Assembly: GCA_001179505.1 (NCBI GenBank) | Contig: CDMY01000244.1 | Coordinates: forward strand, 1 to 64,000 | From: Vitrella brassicaformis CCMP3155 | Lineage: Eukaryota > Protista > Chromerida | DNA: 64,000 bases | Direction: 5' to 3' | Shown: positions 10,719-32,791 of the stretch, piece after piece | Numbering within the stretch: position 1 is the first letter of the stretch | How the letters are laid out: the number at the start of each line of letters is the position of its first letter | Program-made: the position numbers and the translations under genes | The notes under the pieces: generated by a model | The model's database searches: none | What the model was told of the DNA's origin: nothing | The model's input: the letters and a program-made list of their open reading frames with translations, nothing else

Positions 10719-11525
10719 TCAGTCAAACGCGACAATATCGTCGACGGAGTCCTCCAGCCGCTGCGATTTTCTGCACGGCTTGGGCAGCGGGTTGAGGCCC
10801 GAGCAGGCTATCAAGGCACCGTCGCAGTTCTTGTGGCCACACTGTACGATGGACGAAACACACAGCACACCAGTCAGGGGGAGAGCAGTGCAGACATCGC
10901 GCTGCGTGTCCGGTAGGTAGGTAGTACACGTGATTGTGTGCCGACTGGGCGGGCGGACCTTGATGCAAGCTGATGCACAGCTGTTGAAGAGGCAGGGCCA
11001 TTCACACTTGCTGGCGCCGCACGCGATGGATTCTGCCCAACACTCAGAACAGCCAGGGGATACCTGCACACACACACAGAGGTAGGTATATAGAAGACCT
11101 ATGGCTGTCGGCTCGGCTCGGCTGTAGTACAGTACCCACCCCCCCTGGCTGGCTCTCTCACCGTCTTGCCATTGAAGGTCGCTTTATTCAGACAGTCGCG
11201 GGACTTGTCCCGTGATCCGTACGCTGCACAGATCAGCACACACAAGAGAGGATCCGATCCGTGCTGGAGATCTTTGTCTATCTGTCGTTGCCTGTGCTGT
11301 GCCTATCTTACTGCTTCGCCCGCAGCTGAAGACATGCGGGAACCATGCCTTGTCGAACACGATTGCCCTGTCACTCTCGTTGTCGCACTGGCCCGCTGGA
11401 GCGGCCCTCGCCTTCCCTCCCTTGACCGCCGCCTGCACGGCGCTGTCTGGCTGGTTCGGCGGTGATGCGGCCACGATGATGACTGAAACCAAGACAAGCT
11501 GGACAGTCCACCACGAGGCAGCCAT
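10719..11525 (-). CDS. Small secreted cysteine-rich protein (4 exons)
   Basis: Signal peptide MAASWWTVQLVLVSVIIVAAS. Spliced product ...QCDNESD...FSCGRSTYGSRDKSRDCLNKATFNGKTVSPGCSECWAESIACGASKCEWPCLFNSCASACIKCGHKNCDGALIACSGLNPLPKPC...; GT-AG junctions keep the frame. Confidence 0.75.
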
Positions 11526-11678
11526 CGCAGGTGCAGGAAAGATCGCCGCAAAAGATCGTCGCACCAGCGGTTTCATGGGCTTTCATGGAGCGCCCTAAGA
11601 TCACTAATTTGCGAGCTCAGGAAAGGAAGTCCCCACGCTGCTTTGTGGATAATTTCATGCTCCCTGTTGATATTTGTG

Positions 11679-14600
11679 ATGGTTCCGTCGCTCAAGCATG
11701 AGATCTTCGCCTTCAGCAAGCAACTCAAGACCACGCACTCTGTCGGCGGTCTTCTGGCCATGCTCAGCAGATCCAAGCCCCCCATTTCGTCCTTCGATGC
11801 GCATGCTCTTTCTATGACACTCAGCAAGGCGGCCTTCCTCTGCAATGGCAACGCATCCGCTGTCCGCCTGATGCAGCCATTCATGGACAACCTCAAGCAA
11901 CGGACGGCACAAGTCATCTGCCATGCAGATGCACCCACGGACTCAACATCAACGTCGCCTCTCAACCGGGTTGATACGGCTTTCCTCACGAGCGTCGTGT
12001 GGGCGCTCAGTAAGCTGGACCAACTCCATGCCGAAGACCCGCTGACCCAGCAGCTGGCTTCATTGATTGAGGAGCGCCTCGCGTCGGGTGGCGAGACGAT
12101 TGAGTCGCGGAATATCAGTAATGTGGTGTACGCATTCGGCCGAGCGCGGATCTGCCCGTCAAGGCTGTTCGATTCGTGCGCCAGGAGGATGGAGGGGCAG
12201 CTGGCGACCTTTACAGCTCAGGGGCTGGCCAACACGGTATGGGGCTTTGCGAGACTCAAGTATTCATCCGACGCAGTGCAGGGTCTGCTGCATGCCGTCG
12301 TGGAGAGGCTGGAGTGGCTGCCCACAAAGGCAATCGAGGAGTTCACGCCGCAGAACCTATCAAACATCGCGTGGGGGCTGGCGGTGCTCAACTACAACGA
12401 CAAAGGTCATCGCTTCATCTGCATCATATCCGCCTTGATGCTGCCCAAGCTGTCCATCTTTTCGCCGCAGCACATGTGCAACTTGCTGTGGGGCATCGTG
12501 ACGCTCGGCGCTGGGAACACGGCGGACGAGCCGTATCTGAGTGAGGAACTGGCCACTGTCGTTGCCATTGCGGAGGAGGCCCGCTACCAGCTGAACCATT
12601 TCCACGAACAGCACCTCGGCAACATCATCTGGGGCGTATCGACCTTCCTCAGCAACCTGTCAGCCACACTTTATCTCTCACCGGACGGCAAGGCGCCCTT
12701 CACCGAGTCGATTGAGCAGCTGGTGTCGTTTCTGCGTGTTGGCCGTGACGAGGTGCTGCGTCGGGCTCCTGCGGCCTTTCCGACCATCAGTCTGCACGCC
12801 ACGGCCATTTCTCTCGCCAGACCGCCATTCAAAAGGCTCTTAGGGCAACCAGATGAGGTCGACTATCACGTTTTGCAGCTCGTGGCTGAAGGCTTCATGA
12901 AGCGAGAGGAACACGCGTCAATTGAGGAGCGGGTATCTGACATCGTTGCCGCAGCAGAGAGCCCAAGAGAGGCCGAGGAGCACCCTGCTGTGTTGCGCGA
13001 GACGGCACACGCGTTGGTCGTGTACAAGCCACCTTACTGGAGTGCTAATCCACCCTTTCTCGACCCAGTTGACGAGCAGCTGACCAGCGTCGAGGGGCAG
13101 AATCATGTCGCGAGGGTCTCTGGCGAGACCCAGCAAACGGTGGGGGAGGGGGAGGGTGAGGGTAATGTGGTGGACAGCGACGAGCCGCCAGCGAGGTCCA
13201 GAGGAGGTCGTCTGCATTTGTATCTTCGCGACACGATGCCCCACCTGCATGCCTCGCTGTGGAACCCGCGCATCCAGTGTGGCTTCCTCAATCGATTGGA
13301 CCAAGAAGTGTCGGGTAGGCTAGACGCAGGCAGATAGCAGCTGATGTGCTCAACACGTGTGTGTGCACATTTGTGTGTTCAGGTCCAGTGTTGATTGCCA
13401 ATGGCGGCCTGGCATGGGAAATGCTCAGACTGACATTCGACGCGCGACTCGTCAAGAGGTACAGACACACACGTTCATCACATCAAGCCAAGCTGCACTC
13501 ATTTCTGTGTTGCATGAAATGAATGCAGGGAGTATGTGGCACTGTGTCACGGTAAGGCCCCTCTCGGCCCTCTCCCCCTTATCACTGCCCCGCTGCGGTC
13601 CGAGCAATTGAGAGGGCCTAAAGGGGGCACCCAAAACATCACGTCAGTGTCTGCCCAGGGGGACCATGCAGTCACGCAGGCCGAGTGCACCGGGCACTTC
13701 TGCAGGCTGCCCGGTGTGTCTGGCGATGACGCTGTTGCTGTCATGAGCCTCATGCGCGTCAAGATATGGACAGGTGAGTGAGTCAGTGGGACACATGGAA
13801 TGAATGCCTCACTGGAATGCGGGCATCAAGCGCCCGTCCTTCTGTTTTGTGCAGGTCGCACCCACCAGATAAGGGTGCATCTGCGGCACATTGGCCATCC
13901 CATTGTGTGCGATAACAAGTATCTGGAGCCAGACAGATGCGCCAAAGACCAACAGTGGTGAGTACGTAAGGCAACACAGACATCTACCTGTATATCGCCG
14001 CACTCTCATTTGCCCGCCTCTCTGTCTGTCTGTCTGTCTGTCTGTCTGTGCCATGTACATGTATCTGTCACAGGTGTCCGCGCATCTTTCTGCACGCCGA
14101 GAGGCTGTCTTACGTCGACCTGACCAAGCTGATCGATGCAGAGAGAGGCGGGCAGGGCGATGCTGTGTTGGCCTCAGCCGAGAGGATGTCAGAGTTCTGT
14201 GGGGACCCACACAACACCGTCGATCTGTCCTGTCCGCTGTCTAAGGACCTCCAAGACGTGCTGGACAAGCTGCAGAGAGCTGTGTGTGAGTGACGGCATG
14301 TAGGGGAGCCGGGCGGCCGGGAGCCCACTGCCATGGTGTAGATGAGTATTGCATGTGTGTGGGTGGGTGGAATTCTTGTCCATATGCTCATCAACGTGGG
14401 GCACGTCAGCAAACTTGGCCGGATCCTGGCTCTTCTCCGGAAACCCTTCAAACCCGGCTTGCGCTTTCAAGGGCGTCAATGACCCCCAGACCCCGCCGGG
14501 CACCGGCGACACATCGCTGTATCGTGAGGACAAGACAGTGATGGTGGCGATATACATGGGCGAGATCGCCAACAGGTATGTATGTATCTATGGAAGGCAG

Positions 14601-14977: not shown

Positions 14978-15237
14978 CGTGATGAAGTAGCTGTGGGGCG
15001 ACAGGAGGGAGGCGGGTAATCGATCAATGATCCATGGATGGCATGAATGGAATATATTGAACATCTATGTACATTGATTGAGCCGAAAGTCACAGACAGA
15101 CGTTCGAGCACCGACCGACACAGATAGATAGATGGAATCGACGTGCGTACAAAGCGTACAAATCCAACAACACACATACGCACCGCATGGATGCATGGAT
15201 CCTTCTACCTAGCTAGTCCCAATACGCTCTCCGAAAC

Positions 15238-17527
15238 TCACTCCTGCGACAAATCGCCAGCCGGGACATAGCCCAGTTGTGCCTGTATGGCACGTCCACC
15301 CCCCCACCCACCTCTGTGTAGGCACTCTGCTCGCGCTCGACTCACAGGTCTCCGCGCCAGTCGGGTGCTGTCTGCAAAAGTGTCCTCGCGACGCATCCAC
15401 ACTCTTGCCTGCATCCATGGCCACACACAAGACGCAGAGAGAGGCTGAAGGGCTGCTCCTCCCCCCCACCCACCACCTACCCAGGAGCCCCCTATCGTGC
15501 TGGATTGCCCGTGTGAACACCGACTCCCCCGTGCCGATGAAGGTGTGTGCCCGTGCAGCGATCCACTGCTCCACGATGGCGTTGTAGCCAGGGTGGCCCA
15601 GGTCGGTCTCGAAGAAGACCATACTGCCCGCCGGCATCAGCTGACGCAGTTCCACCCTCTCGTCAGCCGTCGCATCCGTACACACAAATGTCTGATCGAA
15701 TGAATCAACACACGTACGTAGAGGAGAGAGGTGTAAGTGACAGCTTGTGTGAAGCGCGTGACGTGATACCTTGGTGACGTTTGTGGTCGCCATCAGCGCC
15801 TTGAGCCGCCGAGCCTGATGGACGGACGATGCACACCGCCCGTGCACATCAACAGATAAAGGGATGGATGCTCCCTGTCCAGTCACCCACCACGTCGGGC
15901 AGAGGCGGAGCGAACTCGGCACGATATCGCGCAAAGTCGCCCCGACGCACATGGGCCGCGAGATACCCCCCAGGTGGCAGGTTGGCAGCGATAAAGGCAT
16001 CACCCAGATCACGCCACTTGCTGCACGCAGAGAGGTGATAATCACCTGTCCCTGGGCATTTTGCGATGGCCGTCCACCCACCGGTTGAACAGGAGAACAT
16101 CGTAGAGGTCTGTCTCGACGAGGGTGGGAGGGAAGGGCACCATCAGGTTGTCTGCACGCTGACAAACAAATCCAACACAGTGAGCATCAGCACCCTGGTC
16201 TCGTACGTTTCCACCTTCAGGAGTATGCTACTCGCCTCTGAGAATGCCGGCTCCTCAACGATCGTCTCTGCCACGTCCTCAGCGGTCGGCCCGTGAGCGT
16301 ACAGATAACACCTCTGAATGAACAGACAGACAGAAAGACAAGCAGTAACCGCAAGTCTCTCTCTTTGTCTCTCTGTCTCTCTCACCGCGTCGCGCGCGTT
16401 GACGATGTCACATTTGCCTGAGTAGCCTGCACGCAGCATTCAAAAGGCGCTGGTGAAAAGTGGGCGTGCAGGTTCATCTGGCGGCCGTGCACGACCCACC
16501 GACTTGATGTGGGTGAGAGCATGAAGACTCTCCGTCAGCACAATGGTGACGGTAATTAACAGAGCGGCCACCACCTGACGAATCGCACACAGATAGGCAA
16601 GCCACTGGAATGGACTTTTATGTCGGTGTGTGTGCCCACCTTCACATTTGGTGAAGTCTTGCATCTGCAGTCTGTTCTGGTCCTTGTCGAATGACGCATC
16701 GGGGAAGAAGCCCTTCCATTGGCCCCACAACAGCGTATCGACCTGCACACACAGACACACAGACACACAGACACATATGCTTGATGGCTCTACAGTCTGG
16801 CGAGTGGGTGGTTTGCTCTGACCTCGAGCATCCCGTCATTGGCCGTCTCGATGTATTCGTCCCACTCCATCACCGGCACAACAGACCGCATCACTGCACA
16901 CACACAACAAATCACACAATCGTAATTAAGCCAGCACCCACAGCAGACCTACCTTGCATGTCGAAGAAGGCCCCCCACGGCAACCGCGGGCGGTCGTCAG
17001 TCGGTGCCCTCCAGTGAACCACATGGCACCAGGGCGGCAGCACCAGCACCCACATCTCATGACACGATCGGCCGCCGCCGCACCGCTGCCATGTGTGCTG
17101 GTTGAGCCTATGGACCACCAGAGCGGCACGGTAAAAGACATCCTTCTGCAGCTGCACAAGGGAGGAAAGCACTCATTTCATTCACTGCCTGCACTGCAGA
17201 GGGGTTCTCTCTGCTCTGTCTGCCTTCCTTGTTACATACATTGAATCCTTCCCCTATCTTGACATCGTACAGCAGGAACCGCAGGGCGCCATGGCACCTC
17301 AACCCGCCAGGCAGCAAGATCCCATTCAGTGCAGCAAGTTGCTCATGATGTGTTTGGTCTTCACGGGGCTCCTTCCTGCGGCCCTTGACGAGCTTGTAGA
17401 GGGCGTCAGCATCGATAAAGAGGCTCCGGCACACCGGAGATGGGTGATCTTCGAAGGCATTGCTTGGCCTTGAGCCCGTACACACGATAAGAATGAGTAG
17501 CAGGGTGTGCACTGCGCGTATTCGCAT
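15238..17527 (-). CDS. POFUT2: GDP-fucose protein O-fucosyltransferase 2
   Basis: Signal/anchor MRIRAVHTLLLILIVCTG. Motifs FLLYDVKIGEGFN|LQKDVFYRAA, WVLVLPPWCHVVHW, YLAAHVRRGDF, FVCTDA, AIVEQWIAARAHTFIGTGESVFTRAI match POFUT2 signatures. Ends AQLGYVPAGDLSQE*. Confidence 0.9.
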
Positions 17528-17656: not shown

Positions 17657-19476
17657 ATGCAGCTTTCACGAATGTGTGTTGGCTTTGTCTTCCTTCTGCT
17701 GGTGTGCTTCCCACGATGCAAAGGCGACGTAGGCATACTCACCTTCTACTTCGGTAAGTAAGCAGCACAGGAGCACACCCCTCACTCACCTCATCTTATC
17801 ATTTGATCCCTTCCCTCCACTTCAGGTGAGCTGGAGGCGCTGAATGCGACTTTGTCAAGGTCTTCGGATCTGCAAGTGTATGAGATCGCGGGCAGGAGGT
17901 TCTACAGCGGGCTGCTGGAGGGCCAGAAGATAGTGGCCACACTCACGGGCATCGGCCTGGTCAACGCTGCAATGACCGCAAGTGAGTCGGGTGGGTAGAC
18001 ATGCGAGGCGGGTCAACAGGAATGCTGTGGACACGTACTTATGCACTCTCTGTATGTGGTCTGCGTGCACTGCAGCCATTATGATTCAGCACTTTCCGAC
18101 GCTCGATGTGATCGTGGGCAGTGGAATATCGGGAGGGGTGGACCCGTCCCTGCGAGTGGGCGACGTCATTGTACCAGATTCATGGATCTTCAACGAAATG
18201 GTGTGGATAGACCGCTCAGCCGTATGCACTCGCATCATCTGCATGGCCTCTTGGGCTGTCAGTTCCACTACGCGAAGACTGCCGAGCCATTGCCCAATAA
18301 CACCACCCGAGACCCCTCCCTGGAGGCCGATGCTGACTTCGTGTTGCCCGACTGGCGCCTCTCACTGCCGTGCGTCGACGGGTGCTTCCTCGCCACAAAA
18401 GGTCCCTGCACCCTTACCATACACCCTTATGGATGTATGTATACCCACAGAGGAATGAGTAATCAGCGACTCATTGTCTGCAGGTGTCCCATGTTTGTCG
18501 CCTGGTGTAAACCACACCGCTGGTGTGGGCTACAATGGACCTACTGCTGAGGCCGAGGCCAGCAATGGGTGTGCTGCCGGGGACGTCGGAGGGGGAGGGG
18601 GAAAACAGCACGCGAACTTCGGGAAGGTGGAGAGCAACTACATCCAATCACGAAGCATCCCGCCCCTTTTCGGCGGTCATTGTGCCCGTCAGGATGCGTC
18701 ATTTGATCACGGTGCAGACTGCAGACCTTTACAGCCCATCAGAGGAAGATGACACGATCGAAACTCCCAACCAGGTCCTCGATTTCCCCGTCGATCCCGC
18801 CCTCCTGGAGCTTGCTAAGGGCCTCAACGCCACTGCAGGCCCGAGGCTTGCTGAGCTGAATGGAGGGGATGGTGGGCTGCCGTACCTTCCACACGTGGTG
18901 GTCGGTGGCAGGGGCGCGTCCGCTGACACATTTCTCGATAACGCCGCGTACCGCAAGTGGCAATTTCAGAACCTTGACATCAGGTGGGCGGGACGGGGGC
19001 AAGACGAACGGCGCAAATGGCGCTCATTTCTCGCCGGTTCAGGTCGATTGACATGGAGAGCACGGCGGTTGCGCATGTGGCCTACCAGGGCCAAAAGCCT
19101 TTCATCATATTCCGGAGCCTCTTGGCCGGCGGAGAGGCCGAGGCAGAGACAGAGTCCGAACAGGAGAACCTTCTCGGCGCCTTCTTCGGCGTCGCCGCGG
19201 CCAACGGCGCAGCCGTCATGGAGACTTTCATCAAGCTGCTCTCGGACAATGGCACAATTGTGTCCAACAGCGAACCAGCCGATGCGCCACTGGAGCCGGC
19301 CCCTGCCGGCCACATCCCCAGTGACGTGTTCAATGACGAGGAATTGGAGGAGTTGGTGGGCATCATCACTTTCTACCAGCCTGAGCTGGACGCCGTCATG
19401 TCCTACAACAACGACACAAATTTTACGAGAGTGGGACCGATACAGGTGGGGTGGGGCGGGGCGGGGAGAGAGCCGA

Positions 19477-19507
<31 letters not shown>

Positions 19508-20674
19508 GGCTTGCAGCGCGGCATCACTATGCCGTGTGTGTGTGTGTGTGTGTCTCGCAGGGTCGCATTTTTTATGTTGGCCGTCTGGAGGAGGTCCCTG
19601 TCGTCCTTACACTCAGTGGCGTTGGCCTCACCAACGCTGCACAAGTAAGAATTGGCAAAGACTGCATATCTGCCTGTGGTTGAGTGAACGTCTGTCTGTC
19701 TGCCTGTCTGTGTCAGACGACCCAACTGCTCATCAGCGAGTTTGGCGTCAAGTACATCCTTGGCAGCGGCATCGGTGGGTCGTTGTCGGAGAAGGTCTTC
19801 ATCGGCGATGTTGTCATCCCAGACAGATGGGCTCAATATCAGATGAGCCACCAGGCCAGAGAGGATGCACAAGGCAACTACTCCCTCCCCGAGTGGGCAA
19901 ACAAATGGCTGGTCAGCTCACCAAACAGAAGGATCATATGGCGGGGCAGAGAGTCCTTGGAACACCGGCGTGTCTTGTGTGTCTGGTGTGTGGACGGTGC
20001 AGGTGCGTGCTGGTGGGTCTGAGTGTCTTGTGAATGATACGCTCGTGTGTGAGTTGGCCAACGACACGGCGAATTACTTCTCCGACTTCACTACGCTTAT
20101 TGAGGTGGCAGATCCCGACGCAGCTGACGACACGCGCTACCTCGAGGTGGGCGGCCGCCGGCTCTTCGACATTGAGGTCGACCCCATAATGTTTAGAGTG
20201 GCGGCACAGCTCACCTCCACTGCGCCAGGGTACGGCTCATTCGGCAAGTTCATTGACCTGAATCCCGTTGGCAGGGGGCGGCCTGAGATTCAGCACGGCG
20301 GGAGGGGCCTCGCGGGCAACTCCTTCATCGACAACGCTCACTATCGCACGTAAGTTAAGTGGTCATGTCAGCCACACACGACAGACACACGACACACGGA
20401 GAGGTCGCGTTTCTTGCTACGGCCTAGGTACATGCACGAGACCTTTGAGAGCGACATCGTCGACATGGAGTCGTCGGCCACGGCTGCAGTGGCCCACCAG
20501 AACGCTATTCCGTTCCTGATTGTGAGGTCTGCATCGGACCTCGCGGGCGGTAGTGAGGATGGGGACGACAAGTCGGCCGTCAGCGACCTCATGGAGTTCC
20601 TCGATGTGGCTGCCGACAACAGTGCGATGGTCATTGCTGCGTTCCTGCAGGAGTGGCGGAGGAGAGACGATTGA
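17657..20674 (+). CDS. Secreted protein with two tandem MTA/SAH nucleosidase (PNP_UDP_1; bark-storage-protein-like) domains
   Basis: Signal peptide MQLSRMCVGFVFLLLVCFPRCKG. Domain 1: LTGIGLVNAA, GSGISGGVDPSLRVGDVIVP, FLDNAAYRKW, IDMESTAVAHV. Domain 2: LSGVGLTNAA, GSGIGGSL..FIGDVVIP, FIDNAHYR, VDMESSATAAV, VRSASDLAGG. Confidence 0.85.
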
Positions 20675-21479: not shown

Positions 21480-24400
21480 ATGAGCGGGACGGCGTGTGTG
21501 AGCCCGTCTGGCATCGGTCCCCTGCAAAATCGGCAGCGCCGCGAGGCTCGCGTGGACAGCGTCATCCCTGTGATGGTGGCGCGCCCAGGGCACTACAGCC
21601 AGGGCACGGTCGTCAAAGCCGTCACCAACCTGCTGCCAGGTCAGCCAACGGCAGAGAAAAACACGTGTGCAGCAAGAGGGCCGGATGTGGTGCGGTGCGG
21701 TTGGTTTCTCTCTTGCCTTGCGTGTGCGCTTCCAGTTCGTGTGACACTGACAGATGACAAGCAGGCGCCCCGTCAGCTCAGTGTCTACTCTATCAAGTGA
21801 GCGAGCGAGCCACACACCACACAGACGAGCACATGCCATGCCACACGTCCGTCCGTCCATGCCGTGCAGGTTCACCCCCGAGCTGCCGGGCAACCTGTCC
21901 CAGCAGACGCGCATCGTGGGCCAGATGAAGGCGGAGCTCATCAACCGCCTCTTCATGGGCCAGCGCACAACACCCATATTCACCGGCATGACCATCCTCA
22001 CCGTGGCACCAACGTGCATCCAAGGCGAACCTGACGAAGCTGTGGAGTTTACGGCTTCGGTCGTGGTGGGGCGTGACCCGGACGGGTGTGAGGTGCGGCG
22101 GGAGTACACAGTGGTCATCGAATGGAAGGCGACATTCCCGCTGGACCCTGCCGGCATCGAGGGGCTGGACAGGAGGTCTCTCGTCAAGGCCAAAATGCAC
22201 AACGCACTGGTGGGTGGGTACAATGGATGTGTGTGTGGTCAATCAAAGCAAAAAGGGTGTGGTGTGGATTGGTATGTTGTGTTGTGTGTATTGATGTGTG
22301 TGTAGTCTCTGTATGTGGACAACGCTGTTCGTCACGCCATCAGGGGCAAAATGAGGACCTGGGCACAATTCCGCGACGCGTTCTACAAGTACAAACAGAG
22401 ACGCTTGGAATGCATGGAACGCATGGAATGGAATGGAATCCATGTGATGTGACTGACACATGCTCAACCAGCCCCCTGTGTTGTGTGTTGTGTGTTGTGT
22501 GTTGTCTATTAGCGTGCATCCGGGCGAGCTGCTGCAAGTGTACAAGCGCTACTCACTCGCCAAGGGCTTCAGGTAGGTCACCCCACGTGGTCTGTTCCGC
22601 GTACTTGATCTTCGTCTGTCTGTGTCGGTGCCGGACCCACCCCCCAATGCACCCACCCGTCCCTCAGCACTGCCACTGTCGACACGGAGCCCCACGGTCC
22701 GCATGTGGCCATTGGTGTGCGGCACCTGCTGCTCGAGGGCCGTGCGGCTGACATCCTCCTCAACATACAAGGCCGCACTCAGGGCACCGGCCAAGACAAA
22801 CAAGACGCTGTCAAGCTGGCCCTTCATGGACGGTCAGTGAGTGGCGGAGGCGGACGGGAGGGGGCTGCGGGATCTGGATGCATGGAGATTGATGGATCAT
22901 CGTTGTTGATGTTTGTGTGCTGCGCTACAGGACGTGTGTGACGCCGATCACTGGCATCAAGTACACGATAGACGACGTTGACTACTTGACCACTCCTGAC
23001 CACACCTTCACGGACAGCAAGGGACAAGTGGTCACCTATAGACAGGTGAGGTGGGCGGGGGGAGAGGATATAGAAAGGGACAAAGGGACACACAACACCT
23101 CCCCTCCCCACTCACCTCACCCCATCGATGATTTGATTTATGTATGTGGCATGCACTGCAGTACTTTCTGGATCGTTATGCTCAGGAGGGCGTCGTAGAC
23201 TATCCGGCCGGCCGTGACTATCCGATGCTGGTGGGTAGGTGGATGCATTTAGCGCTCACATTCACAGATGCAGAGAAAGATCACCAGCCAGCCACACACG
23301 ACATACATACCTGTATGCCTTGTCTTCAGGTGTGCATCCGGCGAGGCAGGGAGGTGCGCATACCGCCGCCCCTAGGTAGGTCCACCCAACCACACCCACA
23401 CACACCCATACACACACACAACGAGACACCGACCGACACAGATGATGGATGCGTCTTGTGTGTGGGTGCAGCCTACATGACGGGCATATCGAAGCGCGAG
23501 GGTCAGGAGCTGAATCAGGTGCGGCAGGAGCTCACCAACAGGACCCGCATGAACGCCGCCCGCCGCGTGGCCGAAACCCAGCAGCGTGTCCAAGCACTCA
23601 TCGGCACCAACAACAGCCCATCCACACAGGCCGCCATTGCCGACAGCGGCATCGAATTCCGCGGCGAGTTCCTTCAAGTGAGCTGAGCTACCTCTGCCCA
23701 GACCACCACCACCACCCAGGGAGACCTCACGAGTCTGTCTGTCTTATGTGGGTGTGCAGGTGGAGGGCCGGGAGCTCAGCAAGGACTTGTTTGCGTCCCG
23801 GATGAGCGTCGGCAACCTCCCCGAGGACGCGTCACCTAGTGACCCGGTGGAGGGCCACCGCATCAGTTCGGCCCTGAAGTTTCGCGTGGACAGCGCGCCC
23901 CAGGCCGTGGTGGAGATCTTCATCGTGCACCAGCAGGGAGAGAAAGAGAAGAAGGAAGTCGATGCCCTCACGACAGCACTCACCACACAGATGAATGAGT
24001 GAGTGAGCGAACGAACGAAACACAACACGTCCCATCCCACCTACTCGTGTGTGTGTGTGTGCGTGTTGGTACAGGTACGGTCTGCGTCACAACGTGACGG
24101 CGCTGCGGGACACTCTGAGGGGAGCGGTGCGACGGGGTGCCTGGCCGTCAGAGTGGGCGGAGTACGTCAAGTACGGCATCCACCAAGTGAGGCTCAAACG
24201 GGACAGACACAGGAACAACCAGCAGCCGGCAGAGTGAGCAAGCTTTGGTTGCAACAGGCAGGGAGGGAGGGAGGGGGGGAAGGAATGACAGAAGGGGAGA
24301 CGAACGATTGATTGTGTGACTGCCATCCGTGTGGCTGGCCGGCAGGTGTTTCATGGTGGTCATCATGCCACTTGGTGTGCATCGGGATGTCTACGGCACG

Positions 24401-26245
24401 ATCAAGCGGCTCATGTGCATCGAGCAGCCGATCCTCTCCCAGTGCGTCAAGAGCAAAACCGTTCACGACAGATTCGTCAGAGTAACCAACCCACCCACAC
24501 ACCAACTCAAGCCACCAGGGCTGAACCAACACACTCTGTGTGTGTGTGTGTGTGTGTGTGATTGTAGGAGCCGGCCAGCTCCATGGTTCGGTCCAAGCTG
24601 GTGTGTCAGATGATCAGCAAGATGGGCGGCTGGGGCTGGACCCTCCCCGCCATCGCAGACTCGGTCTCCGAAGAGACCGACGCCGGCGTCAAGGTCCGCA
24701 AGGAGACCATGGTCATCGGCATCAACGCGGGGCAGGTGCGGCGCACACAGGTCCTCACCATGACCGCATCGTTCAACCAAGAGTAAGTTGGCCATATCAT
24801 CAAAGGCAGGCGCATTCGTCACATTGTCATGCCGTCCGTCATGACGCTTGGTTGGGTCAGGTTCACTCGTTATCTGAGTGTGGTTGAGGTGCTGAGGTCT
24901 GAGCCGTCCGCGGCCACCTTCATGGAGATGGAGGCCGACAAGCTGCAGCAACACCTACCGGACTTCACACGACACTACGCCGAGAAGAACGGCGGCAAAC
25001 TGCCCGAACGGATCGTCATATACCGGTACACACACACACATGCACACACACACACACACACACACGCACACCAGCAACAAGAGAGCACCCACAACGCCGT
25101 GCGCTCCATCTGTGCCTTCGTTGCTGCAGTGACGGCCTTCCCGAAGCCGAGAAACGCATCCTCTTCAAGTAAGTACGGTGCAGACACGACACACCCCACA
25201 CAAGACACCAGCAAGGGTGTCGGTCGGTGCCTATCTTTCTATGTGCCATTTTTTCAGGCTGTACGAGGACGCCATCAAGGCCGCCATCCAGGACTTCCCC
25301 CGCCGCACACGTCTGGTGCACCCCTCAGATGTGACACAGACAGGCCAGTCGCGGCCGTCGTCCTCGCCGCCTGCCTTCAGCCCCTGCGTCACTCTCTGCA
25401 TCGTGGCCCTGCGCGGCACACAGGGCGTCAAATTCGCCCAAGTGCATCCCGACCAGCAGGTCGGTCAGCTCGCAGACTGACAGACTGACAGACAGACAGA
25501 CCACCTCATATAGCATATGGGTGGGTGTTACGGCTGCATCTGTGTGTGTGTGTGTGTGTGTGTGCAGGTGACGAACCCTCCTCCCCACACCGTGTTTGAC
25601 CGTGGAATCAACCGGCAGCACAAATTCGACTTCTGTAAGGAAGACTGGCGACCTAATGGCGGCAGCATTTCCTACCTACATTTGTTTGCCTGCATGGCAC
25701 GGTTGGGTGTATGGCGTCCGTCAGACATTGCTCACCAGCAGGTGCCCACCGGCAGCGTGAGTCCGACCTACTACGACGTGCTCTACAACAGTCCCCTGCT
25801 GGACGCTCCCAGCGGCGGCAGCAACGGGTGTGTGGGCTTCAATGCCGACAACTTCATCAACCTGACCACTCAGCTGGCAAACCTCTACCAAAACTGGTGC
25901 TGGTGACTGGTGGGGGGCCGGGCGGGCAGGAGAGGACACACGGCACGGCCCCTGTGCTGTGCTGCATGCCCCATCCATCCAGAGCCCCTGTCTATTTGAT
26001 TGTGTGTGTGTGTGTGTGTGTGCAGGGCGGGCCCCATCCGGATGCCGCAGCCACTGATGTACGCCAAGAAGCTATCGGTCGGTCGGTGAGGGGGAGAGAC
26101 GATATGATACGGTCCCACTCCCGTACGGCGCCCGACTTGTTTGTGCATGTGATGGATCGATCGATTGATTCATCAGGATTTGGTGTCCGAGTATCTGCGT
26201 GAGCGGCCAGACGAAAGCCTCCGCCAGAACCTCTTCTACCTGTGA
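21480..26245 (+). CDS. PIWI-clade Argonaute (N-PAZ-MID-PIWI), predicted non-slicing
   Basis: N-terminal RPGHYSQGTVVKAVTN. PAZ: TGIKYTIDDVDYLTTPDHTF...YFLDRY. MID: VYGTIKRLMCIEQPILSQCV, QMISKMGG. PIWI: MVIGIN, LPERIVIYR|DG, NPPPHTVFD, SVSPTYYDVL, LANLYQNW.GPIRMPQPLMYAKKL. C-terminus ESLRQNLFYL* (TGA 26243-26245). Confidence 0.92.
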
Positions 26246-27269: not shown

Positions 27270-30200
27270 TCAGCACCCGCCCCCGCCGTCTGTCCCGTGC
27301 CAGTCGAGGTACACAATCACACACGTCATATTGTCCATCGAACCCTGCACACACACACACACACACACACGATGATCATGGAAACGATGCCAGCCAACCT
27401 CCTGATCCGCTGACCTCTTTCCAGGCTGCGCGTATGACCTTATCGGCCGCCCTCCTGAGACGCTTGAGGACGTCGGCATCCTTGTCGGTCCCCTTGCCGT
27501 CTCGGGGGGCTGCGCACGCCTTGGCGTGGACCTCCAGCCCACTCTCCTCACCCCCACCCGCTGCCGCACCGGAGGAGCCGTTGTTGCGGCGCCCTGGACG
27601 GGGCACACAACGACCCTGCACACAGACAAACACAGCATACACAGAGGACACAAATGAGAGAAAGGGTGGGTGTTGGAACGTCGACTGACAGAGGGGCTGT
27701 CGCCTTCCCCCCTGCCGATTGCCGCAGTCAGGACGACATGCGTCAGCCGGCAGGGGGGACGCGCCCGCCCGTCCGCTAAATGTTCATCCCATGCCTCACT
27801 GTCGCACCCGCATGAAAGACCATGCTCACGTGGATCGCACGACTGAATCCTAGGTGCTGCCTGCCTGCCCCCTCGCCGCCTTTCTCCATCCATCGTGTAA
27901 CCAACCATTCATACTCACCTCATTTGCTCCTCCGCCGCCCTTATTGGTCATGTCGTATGTCATGGTCCATCCCTTGTCTCGCTGCACACCCCTCGCCACG
28001 ATGCTCGCCCACGACGGCGCTGCTGGCGTGGCGGACTCGGACGAAGAGGAGGACGACGATGCAACGCCCATGGTGCTGCCGCTGCTGCTGCTGCTGCTGC
28101 CTCTGTCGGCCGCTGCAGCAGCGGCAGCCGTTGGGGGCTCACTCGTGTCGGAGTCGTTGGGGGTCTTCTCGGTGCTATCTCCTCCCGATGCGCGGGAGGT
28201 GGCTGTGTTGTCCTTGATGTCCTTGTGGGAGTTGGGTGAGGAGGGGTGGACCACGACCGACTGGGAGGATGCAGACGAGGGGGAGGCCTCGTCACCGTCC
28301 AACTGAGGGATCAAACGAGATATGCTTCTGGCGGGAAAGGGGGAGGGGGGTTGTTCCTCGCCGACCTCGTTGGCGATGATTTTGATGGTTTCTTCATCGG
28401 ACAGCACGTCCCACACGCCGTCGCTGCACAGCACCATGAAGCGATCGCCGGGCTGCAACGGACGCTGCACACACAGGAGAATGAGGGAGACTATGAGGGT
28501 GGGTTGGTCGACATCTGGTCTGCCTCATGGCGGTTGTTTGTTTGTTGTGGGTACCGAGTAGCACTCTGGCTCGGCAATGACGAGGTCGCTATTCTGCCGC
28601 TTGATATCGAAGTTGCCGAAGGCTCGCGAAACCGCAAGCCGACGCTGCACACCGTGACCGCTAACCCTGCAAACACACAGCAAACACACACCATCTTCCT
28701 TCCATGGCTTTCCGTGTCGCCTTCTCTTCTTGGGTTGCTTTGCTTGCTGACCTGGGGCAGCCGACATGCACGACCCAGCCTCCCGCCCGGCGGATGCGCT
28801 CCATTTCGTCATGTCTGTTGGGCTTGTGGTCGTGAGTCAGACGGACGGCACGGTAAGACACTGTCGCCGCCACAGACGCCTGCACACATGAACAAAGAAC
28901 ACACACGACACAGGTGGTGCGAGCCCATCCTGCTGGCGCCGCTCCCTCCAAAAGTCGTTTGCGCATCACATCACCTGTGGCAGTCCCTCTCCCTGCTGCT
29001 GTTGCTGCTGGTTGTGCGATTCCCCCTGCTGCTGCTTCCCGCTGTTTTCGCCCCCATCCCCACTCCCCCCTGCCGCGTTGGCCCCCTCGTTGGTCGCTGC
29101 CCCCTCCTCCCCGCCGTCCCCACCCCCAGAGCTACCATCCTCCATCTTAATGTCGCCGTCCCGCTCCTCATCCTTATCGTCATCGCTGCTCTCGCTGTCC
29201 ACCTCCATACGATCACCACACGCCGGCAAGAGCCCGTTCGACGTCCGCCGGCAGATGCCGATCTTGCCCAGGGGCTCCTCCGACTGCTCCTCGGGCAACG
29301 GCGACGAGGGAGACATCTCGATGTCACCTTCCTTGTCCACCACCGTGGCAGTGTTGGTGCTGTTGGGGGAGGCGCTGCTCCCGGTGCCGTTGAGCAACGA
29401 TGATGCCTCGTTGACCGACTCGAATGGTGTGCGGGAGGGCCGGTCGGGCGAGACGGTGGCCGCCAGGTCGTCGAGGTCACCGATGGGTGAGATCTTGGGG
29501 AGCAGGGGAGTGCCGGGGGGCTCCAACGGCTCGTCGCCGGCAGCATCTGCAGCTGCGTCGCCGTTTTCGCCATCATGATGTGGCTGCTCCGCCCCCCTCT
29601 GCGCCTCCCTGTCTCCATTCCTGACATCCTCCTCTTTGGTCTCGACACCAGCAGCGGCAGCGGCAGCCGCCGGCACCAGGTCGCCATTCACCACCACCAC
29701 TTCAGCCCCCTCTTCATCCGCTGGCACGTCAGCTCGACTGTCGCTATCGTCGGCCTGGTCACCCTCAGCCACCGGCAGGACGTCCACCGTCTTCGGGGAT
29801 GCGGTGAGCGGCGTGTGCGGCAGGGAGCCCTCCGGGGTGGGTGTGTCGAAGGGCAGCTCGTTCTCGTCGTTGGTGGTGGCCAGCACTGCCCGTGAGTCGC
29901 CGATGTGCGCCAGGTGGAGCACGTTGTGGAAGACTAGGCACACCAGGGCCGTGCTGCCGTCCTGGCCAGAACACCTCTCCAAGAACCGTCTGGTACACAC
30001 ACACACACACAGACAGACAGACGAGGTCAGGGCATTTCGCATCGATCTATCGCCTTCTGACCTGTCGAGCTCCAGAAATGCGTTCCGAAACGCCTCGTGG
30101 AAGTTGGCGCGGAAATGCTGGATGGACAGGCAGAACGACAACCACAGCTATCTATGATGCGGTCGGTGTACGTGTGTCGGATCGTCCGTCCGTCTGCCCA

Positions 30201-31082: not shown

Positions 31083-31636
31083 TGCACTGTAAAAGCTCGT
31101 CACCGAACGACTGTGACTTCCCGCTCCCGGAGTGGCCACCTAACAACACACACACAGAACACACAGACCGCACCAAATGATAGAAGTACGCGTCACGTAA
31201 ACCGCACAAGATAGATCCCTGTGCTCTCTTCTTTGCTCACATACATTCTGCTCTCGCGTCCTTGGCGTCATCTCTGCGTCCTTTTTGGCTTTCGGATTCT
31301 GACGCGGCGACGTCGGCGGCACTTCCGGTGGAGGCTCGCCGCTCGGGCACGATGCTGACGAGGCAGCCATGCCGCTGGTTTTCGTGGTTGCTGCTGCGCT
31401 GTACTTATCAAGGTGGATCAGACGACGCAAAAGTGGCTATCGCACAAATTGAGGATACCGCCGCCTTTGACTCTGGCTGCGGAGCTAAGATACAACAAGT
31501 ACCTTCCATTTCTACCTCCCTCCTTCCCGAATGCGAGCTTGAATGGAGCGGAGGAGGCGAGAGAGAAGGCAACGATGTGCTGGCCGCCCATGCTTCTGTG
31601 AAAGCCAATTCAAAGAGAGAAGGCGTGAGTTTCGCA

Positions 31637-32791
31637 ATGGCTGCAAACGAGAGTTCTGGTGGTCTTCGCATCATCGGTGCAGGCTTTGGGCGCACAGGGT
31701 GAGCCGATGGGTGGATCGCTTGACAAAAGGATGGATGCTTGTGTTGATGCCTAGCTGCAGGACGTTATCGCTTAAGAAAGCCCTCGAGATGATAGGCTAT
31801 GGCCCATGCTTCCACATGACAGAGATCATCTTTGACCCCAAGGCGCCACGGAAAGCGCGGCAGTGGAAGCAGATCGTGGACAGAGATGGCAATGACGTCG
31901 ACTGGCACAAGGTAAGCGCACGCAGACAGACAGACAGACAGGCCGGCGGGCAGGCTTGGATGGATTGCACTGATCACCATGAGCCACATGTGTCTTATCG
32001 ATGCGATGCATGCTGCAGGTGTTCGAGGGCTATGTGTCTGCCGTGGACTTCCCAAGCGCCCTCTTTTACCAAGAGCAGATGCAGGCGTTCCCTGACGCAA
32101 AGGTGGCTGGCTGCTTTGCTCACAGCTGCCCACCCTCCCTCCCTGATCGCACACACTGTGTCGCCTCTGCTGTCCCTCTGCCTGCAGGTGATTCTCACCA
32201 TCCGCGACCCTCACAAGTGGTACGCGAGTGCGCGTGAGACCATCCTGCGGAACCGCCATAACTTCAAGTCCTTCCCCGTCAACGTCGGCATCTGGCTGGT
32301 GGGGCTCGCCGACCTCACCGACCTCGTCATGAACTACGGCCGACTGCGGTGCTGCACTGACGCACACGACATGGACAAGATGACGGAGGAGGGCAGTGTA
32401 CGGCGATTCAACGAGTGGGTGGAAGAGGTGAAGCGGACAGTCCAGCCAGTAGACAAGCTGCTGGTCTTCGAGGTACGCACGGACGGACCAGCAGGAAACA
32501 AAGGTGCATGGACAGACAGACAGACAGACAGACAACATGCCATGCACAATCGGTTTGTGGGTGTTTGGTCAGGTGTCGGATGGGTGGGAGCCTCTCTGTC
32601 GGTTCCTGGATGTGCCGGTCCCCCCCGTGCCGTTCCCCCGAGTGAATGATCGTGACGAGTTCACCACGCGCCAAGGGAATTACATGAGGCTCCTCACCGC
32701 CATTGGCTGGGCGGCTGTGGTGAGCGCGGCGGGGGCTCTAGCAGGCTGTGTGTGGCTGGTAGGCCATGGCATTAGGAAGATGAGCAAGTGA
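31637..32791 (+). CDS. Sulfotransferase-family P-loop protein (bacterial/fungal Sulfotransfer_4-like) with a C-terminal hydrophobic anchor
   Basis: LRIIGAGFGRTG|TLSLKKALEMIGYGPCFHM, AVDFPSALFY, KVILTIRDPHKWYAS, LLVFE|VSDGWEPLCRFLDVPVP.VPFPRVND. Tail LLTAIGWAAVVSAAGALAGCVWLVG. Confidence 0.85.

Follow-up and report, generated by a model that had tools for sequence, protein, structure and literature searches.

A gene on the forward strand of contig CDMY01000244.1 of the chromerid alga Vitrella brassicaformis CCMP3155 (positions 21480–26245 of a window of 64,000 nucleotides) probably encodes a PIWI-clade Argonaute that is loaded with a guide but does not slice its targets, and the gene is apparently intact (we put the probability of this reading at about 0.6). 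The gene is labelled C244 here after its contig, and loci on other Vitrella contigs are labelled likewise (for example, C531 and C334). This reading is the most likely one because the predicted protein keeps the guide pocket and has lost slicer residues. Among free-living organisms, chromerids are the nearest relatives of the Apicomplexa, most of which lost RNA interference, and in the literature searched we found no paper describing chromerid Argonautes. An earlier interpretation of the same letters, made without database searches (the sequence-only reading), had pointed to the gene, and every motif and coordinate that it gave was found at its place.

We built the gene model by hand from reading frames, GT–AG sites and the colinear exons of the nearest paralogue, C531. 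Searches were run exon by exon or with exon profiles, and the spliced model was used for frame, coordinates and codon statistics. The assembly searched was the published one for this strain (72,700,666 bases in 1064 contigs; PMC4501334). Translation of the model gives 939 amino acids from a coding sequence of 2820 nucleotides with zero internal stops, and all 20 introns (73–128 nucleotides) begin with GT and end with AG (40/40 canonical splice sites). The sequence-only reading had described an open frame across about 20 exons that does not look like a decayed pseudogene; the open frame stands, and the exon number is exactly 21 (Table 1). The gene is thus apparently an intact nuclear one that does not look decayed, as judged from the model.

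Evidence on splicing also comes from a sister copy. The metatranscriptome contig JGI 3300017148 is a spliced transcript of C334, aligning in seven blocks of 99–100% identity to C334:56500–66499, and its called open reading frame (ORF), P0001, represents the spliced C terminus of that copy. Against the genome, the transcript uses the donors GTACGC, GTAGGC, GTAAGC, GTACGT and GTGCGT, with introns of 67–141 nucleotides. The weak-looking donors in the C244 model (GTAC.. and GTGC..) are therefore normal for Vitrella, and both the donor types and the intron sizes of C244 agree with these transcript-proven introns. The C334 transcript also has an intron in its 3′ untranslated region. In many C244 introns (TG)n or (CA)n tracts adjoin the acceptors (for example, 24530–24560, 25030–25065, 25545–25565 and 26000–26022), and such tracts are also present in introns of the paralogues.

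The 5′-phosphate pocket (Y584, K588, Q600, Q627 and K631) and the free C terminus are intact in the predicted protein, in keeping with the complete pocket reported earlier. In a search of the PDB, exon 13 aligns to residues 496–532 of mouse MILI (E = 5.8 × 10−5), with Y584, K588 and S599–Q600 on the Y..K..SQ columns of that protein, and positions 2–40 of the Pfam Piwi model match the same exon (E = 0.0031). An exon-14 profile searched against the PDB places Q627 and K631 on the QMN.K.GG motif of PIWIL1 and EfPiwi. At the other end of the protein, LFYL stands directly before the TGA stop codon, so that the terminal carboxylate would be left free; in alignments with PIWI structures, the C-terminal LFFL of P0001 falls on their LFFL and LYYL termini.

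The predicted active site reads N-(E)-D-K, compared with the canonical Asp-Glu-Asp-His, so the slicer tetrad is altered at two of its four positions. Exon 14 alone had no match in the PDB. A profile made from exon 14 and the corresponding exons of four paralogues (alignment A3) matches Argonaute structures (E = 0.0034), among them residues 638–670 of Siwi, and the Siwi match ends at residue 670, with Asn666 in the column of D670, which we take to be the first catalytic Asp of Siwi. The earlier claim that the first Asp has become Asn is borne out by this alignment, which also speaks against the possibility, raised at the time, that the Asn lies outside the catalytic position. Asn666 is not a sequencing slip, because the motif is likewise GIN in the paralogues C334 and C239 and is GVS in C531. 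The second catalytic Asp had been called intact; a profile of the YRDG region (alignment A5) matches Siwi 720–786 (E = 4 × 10−13) and, by column count, sets Asp741 on Siwi D740. At the fourth position, the Lys already noted falls on the histidine column of YAHKL by way of P0001: PLMYAKKLS of C244 aligns under PLIYAAKLS of P0001, which is itself aligned to P..YAHKLA of EfPiwi and PIWIL1, and Lys914 therefore replaces the catalytic histidine. As for the glutamate finger, it is probably still present, as either E707 or E709. Both residues are invariant across three alignable subfamily members, and the ungapped spacing from the Siwi alignment (R722 on Siwi K722) sets Siwi E708 between them; in PDB searches, neither exon 15 alone nor an exon-15 profile matched a structure.

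Sequence comparison identifies the predicted protein as a PIWI-clade-like Argonaute with the usual N-PAZ-MID-PIWI layout. We tested the clade by scores, exon by exon, against solved structures. All 11 of the PDB matches to exon 7 are PAZ domains of PIWIL2 or PIWIL1 (best E = 0.0028), and the Pfam PAZ model matches this exon with E = 0.029, below its curated cut-off. The MID exon (exon 13) ranks MILI first, and the A3 profile around the first catalytic position matches only PIWI-clade chains and AfPiwi, with zero AGO-clade chains in the PDB. Exons 18–19 matched only PIWI-clade chains in the PDB, weakly (E = 0.23–3.3), and are 52% identical to the transcript fragment P0001, which carries Pfam Piwi. 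P0001 scores 50–57 bits against five PIWI-clade chains (EfPiwi at 56.7 bits, its two variants, PIWIL1 and Drosophila Piwi), 34 bits against Siwi, 29 bits against MILI and 21–29 bits against human AGOs. The stretch from YAKKL to LFYL and the stop codon follows the PIWI-type C-terminal pattern, with His swapped for Lys. By these scores PIWI structures come first for each of four pieces (PAZ, MID, first-Asp and C-terminal), in line with the PIWI clade that the sequence-only reading had proposed from motifs.

Table 1. Exons of the C244 gene and the features that they carry. A slash within a motif marks an exon junction.
Exon	Coordinates	Strand	Feature
1	21480–21639	+	Start codon ATG at 21480
2	21736–21796	+	
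3	21870–22209	+	
4	22306–22388	+	
5	22513–22572	+	
6	22668–22832	+	
7	22931–23045	+	PAZ-domain core (YTIDDVDYLTTPDHTF)
8	23162–23230	+	
9	23330–23375	+	
10	23472–23677	+	
11	23760–23998	+	
12	24075–24233	+	
13	24346–24481	+	End of MID and start of PIWI; VYGTIK (24389–24406) with Y584 (24392–24394) and K588 (24404–24406); SQC (24437–24445) with Q600 (24440–24442)
14	24568–24782	+	QMISKMGG (24607–24630) with Q627 (24607–24609) and K631 (24619–24621); first catalytic position, Asn666 (AAC, 24724–24726), in GINAG of MVIGINAG
15	24861–25025	+	Candidate glutamate finger E707 (24925–24927) or E709 (24931–24933), then EKNGGKLPERIVIY toward the second Asp
16	25130–25168	+	Second catalytic Asp741 (GAC, 25131–25133), at the junction in YR/DGLPEAEK; alignment A5 and profile
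17	25258–25459	+	
18	25568–25634	+	
19	25725–25896	+	
18–19	25568–25896	+	Conserved PIWI-domain core, NPPPHTVFD...KFDF/Y...GSVSPTYYDVLYN...YQNW
20	26026–26077	+	Fourth catalytic position, Lys914 (AAG, 26066–26068), in PLMYAKKLS
21	26177–26245	+	C-terminal ...RQNLFYL, then TGA (26243–26245)

To place the gene among its relatives, we gathered loci from the genome with Pfam Piwi and exon queries. The PIWI-like family has 13 loci, a lower bound that includes C244 itself: C244, C531, C334, C239, C309, C425, C227 (two loci), C413, C537, C319, C786 and C964. A census of paralogues and their tetrads had been suggested by the sequence-only reading, and none of these 13 loci has a full D-E-D-H tetrad in the exons that were read. 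The loci fall into two subfamilies. In subfamily (i), which consists of C244, C531, C334 and C239, the first position is N (C244, C334 and C239) or S (C531), the third is D, the fourth is K (C244) or A, and the protein ends in LF(F/Y)L. In subfamily (ii), which comprises the other nine loci, the first position is D, E or A, the third is T, S or C where readable, the fourth is E where readable, and the end is LWFL. C244 and its sister copies (C531, C334, C239 and P0001) share K.GG(W/H)GW..PAI, IYRDG(L/V)PEAEK, SPTYYDVL, YA(K/A)KL and the LF(F/Y)L end, with identities of about 33–82% per exon. They differ at the fourth position, which is Lys in C244 and Ala in the sister paralogues, and in the reading frame, which is broken by a stop in the C334 transcript and open throughout in C244. 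C244 is an intact-looking representative of a family of some evolutionary interest.

Within subfamily (ii), C425 (L014 7912–8529), the C227 locus near 629.5 kb (L016 7507–8332) and C413 (L018 2201–3210) have near-identical exons (IVCKVGGAAWGLNVKGRKPLMAIGVDSRK; IYRTGLGEGQK). The three loci, which have Thr in place of the second Asp, seem to stem from a single gene that was recently triplicated. A contig from ENA ERZ893784 (k147_991288) encodes P0003, a near-copy of the C-terminal part of C334/C239 with an unspliced intron read through; the environmental sample behind it therefore contains Vitrella-like DNA.

The genome also encodes candidate partners for a PIWI protein. The sequence-only reading had called for a search for RNA-dependent RNA polymerase (RdRP) and Dicer, and genes with RdRP and RNase III domains are both present. 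RdRP domains (PF05183) occur at a minimum of five loci (C246:44845–48477, C246:116216–118083, C91:122840–126010, C338:7638–9573 and C379:26550–26966) and RNase III domains at four. Two of the RdRP loci share one contig (C246), and one RdRP lies in a stop-free frame of 1585 amino acids. Because an intact-looking member of a PIWI-like family occurs alongside RdRP and RNase III genes, C244 offers a handle on the small-RNA machinery of the apicomplexan ancestor.

Beyond the gene structure, the residues, the likeness to the PIWI clade and the family setting shown above, we infer RNA binding, loss of cleavage, a source of guides and a biological role for the C244 protein. Since the pocket and the terminal carboxylate are kept, the protein should anchor the 5′ end of a guide: the MID pocket and free carboxylate would hold the 5′-monophosphate end of a small RNA. 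With two metal ligands replaced by Asn and Lys, it should not cleave, as the Asn-(Glu)-Asp-Lys site would be unable to hold the two metal ions for target cutting. The loaded protein would then find complementary RNA and either recruit other factors or hold or sequester that RNA. The Dicer-like and RdRP enzymes encoded in the genome would probably supply the guides, plausibly as for Tetrahymena Twi2p and Twi8p. In PMC5340916, alveolate PIWIs, including Twi2p and Twi8p, are described as loaded by an RdRP-coupled Dicer.

Comparison with known systems helps to frame this proposal. The metazoan PIWI structures (Siwi 5GUH, MILI/PIWIL2 7YFY, PIWIL1 9S0Z, EfPiwi 7KX7 and Drosophila Piwi 6KR6) have the same domain order as C244 and align with it in the PAZ core, the MID pocket (Y..K, SQ and Q...K.GG), IYRDG, PTYY..V, YA-x-KL and the L-F/Y-F/Y-L end. 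They keep D-E-D-H, however, whereas C244 has Asn for the first Asp and Lys for the His. C244 has lineage-specific inserts relative to these proteins: one of about 17 amino acids ahead of the first catalytic position, another of about 24 amino acids in exon 17. Unlike animal PIWIs of the piRNA pathway, it shows no Arg-Gly/RA repeats in the 35 residues ahead of the N domain, and its host is a unicellular alga that lacks a germline. Inactive AGO-clade proteins offer a functional parallel: human AGO1 and AGO4 and the worm WAGOs retain guide binding, have lost slicer residues and silence through the recruitment of partners. They belong to a different clade, as the PAZ, MID and C-terminal signatures of C244 are PIWI-type.

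The ciliate PIWI proteins of Tetrahymena (Twi1–12) and Paramecium (Ptiwi) share with Vitrella an alveolate lineage and an expanded Argonaute repertoire that is PIWI-only as far as seen, and in both cases there are Dicer and RdRP partners in the genome. We know of no nuclear dimorphism or programmed DNA elimination in Vitrella. Among the ciliate proteins, Twi12p presumably lacks the catalytic residues. On the account in PMC5340916, this divergent PIWI can function without target silencing. A wider scenario is that the Vitrella small-RNA system rests almost wholly on PIWI-clade proteins that do not slice and that receive their guides from Dicer and RdRP. In this scenario the N/S-E-D-K/A subfamily would be an ancient effector maintained by selection (for example, in transcriptional or chromatin-based genome surveillance, as in ciliates), and the arrangement would go back to the shared ancestor of chromerids and Apicomplexa, at a time when most of the parasites had yet to lose RNA interference; taken as a whole, we consider this speculative and quite unlikely.

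The sequence-only reading had gone on to infer an uncharacterised cleavage-independent silencing or genome-surveillance pathway, and that step is weakened on two counts. A slicer-dead PIWI paralogue is familiar in itself, as PIWI proteins that work independently of slicing have been described (ciliate Twi12 and Drosophila Piwi, the latter of which silences without needing to slice), and C244 is not singular but one of at least 13 PIWI-like loci. Several points weigh against a guide-loaded, non-slicing effector encoded by an intact gene. The Pfam matches on single exons (stop-free segments; PAZ and Piwi) are sub-threshold, and the position of the glutamate finger is set by spacing only. The C334 transcript has its in-frame stop 5 codons from the 5′ end, upstream of the ORF P0001. 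No transcript, orthologue or deposited protein of C244 was recovered with queries that were fragments of limited length. An exhaustive representative search with exons 18–19 returned P0001 and one repeat protein, a spurious match, and did not return the product of the gene itself. As word-search queries, exon 3 and exons 18–19 gave nothing, and P0001 gave only itself and P0003. No relative appeared in two metagenome scans, and an ESM Atlas look-up of P0001 returned only noise. Across the 422 codons that can be aligned with C531, pN is 0.36 and pS is 0.60, giving a dN/dS of about 0.4; this is a sign of coding constraint, but the value averages an old divergence over alignable exons only, with saturated dS, and is silent on recent decay.

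Much of this bears on the main null hypothesis, that C244 is a duplicate which is silent or was inactivated not long ago, and so a future pseudogene whose frame is still open because selection was lost recently. This is unlikely. The family is large and partly decaying, as the stop upstream of the last exons in the C334 transcript indicates; the fragment queries found no transcript of the C244 copy; and C244 forms a long, lone branch, being about 45% identical to its nearest paralogue. The missing transcript is uninformative, however, because the searches saw only fragments of limited length, and a decaying copy is at odds with 939 codons in 21 exons free of stops and frameshifts, with the canonical splice sites and with the intact pocket residues and C terminus. 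The codon statistics are also those typical of a coding gene: identity to C531 over the same 422 codons is 0.59, 0.71 and 0.445 at the first, second and third positions, and GC content at third codon positions is 0.79 compared with 0.555 in the introns. A working gene could still act outside silencing, as the main functional rival holds: the protein would bind fragments of abundant structured RNAs, such as the 3′ ends of tRNAs, and would act for an RNA-processing enzyme as its chaperone or import factor. The precedent, as given in PMC5340916, is Twi12p, the most divergent Tetrahymena Piwi, which binds tRNA 3′ fragments, is needed for nuclear import of Xrn2 and works through that import and not by target silencing. 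C244 resembles it in being a divergent PIWI whose active site is broken, but the C244 sequence gives no hint of a connection with tRNA fragments or Xrn2, and we judge such a role decidedly unlikely. It is very improbable that the protein still cuts targets through a non-canonical N-E-D-K site. The second Asp is kept, the glutamate is probably kept, and the fourth tetrad position does differ among active Argonautes, being His or Asp; yet the first Asp is a metal ligand whose replacement abolishes slicing in the Argonautes studied, Lys914 puts a positive charge at a metal-ligand site, and the two changes occur together. Equally improbable is membership of the AGO clade. It would be favoured by the YRDG region, whose scores against Siwi and human AGO1 are much the same and do not discriminate between clades, and by the plant AGO1 MID domain among the weaker matches to exon 13. 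Against it stand the PAZ exon and the first-Asp profile, a C-terminal region that favours PIWI by about 27 bits, the PIWI-type YA-x-KL motif and LFYL end, and a genome search in which the AGO-type domains ArgoL1 and ArgoMid gave nothing above threshold.

Functional clustering of C244 with its neighbours was considered and rejected, as the flanking genes are unrelated to RNA silencing. Upstream, at 18978–20674 (+), lies a gene with a PNP_UDP_1 phosphorylase-superfamily domain (E = 7 × 10−6) and a nucleosidase-like motif extending to about 20674. Downstream are a PP2C phosphatase gene of at least 2 exons at 27853–30147 (−) and a gene with a Sulfotransfer_4 domain at 31543–32646 (+; E = 7.8 × 10−20). 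Also among the neighbours, a FAST kinase-like (FAST_1) domain occurs in an open frame of 616 amino acids at 11487–13334 (+), and a weak O-fucosyltransferase (O-FucT) match lies at 15212–16186 (−).

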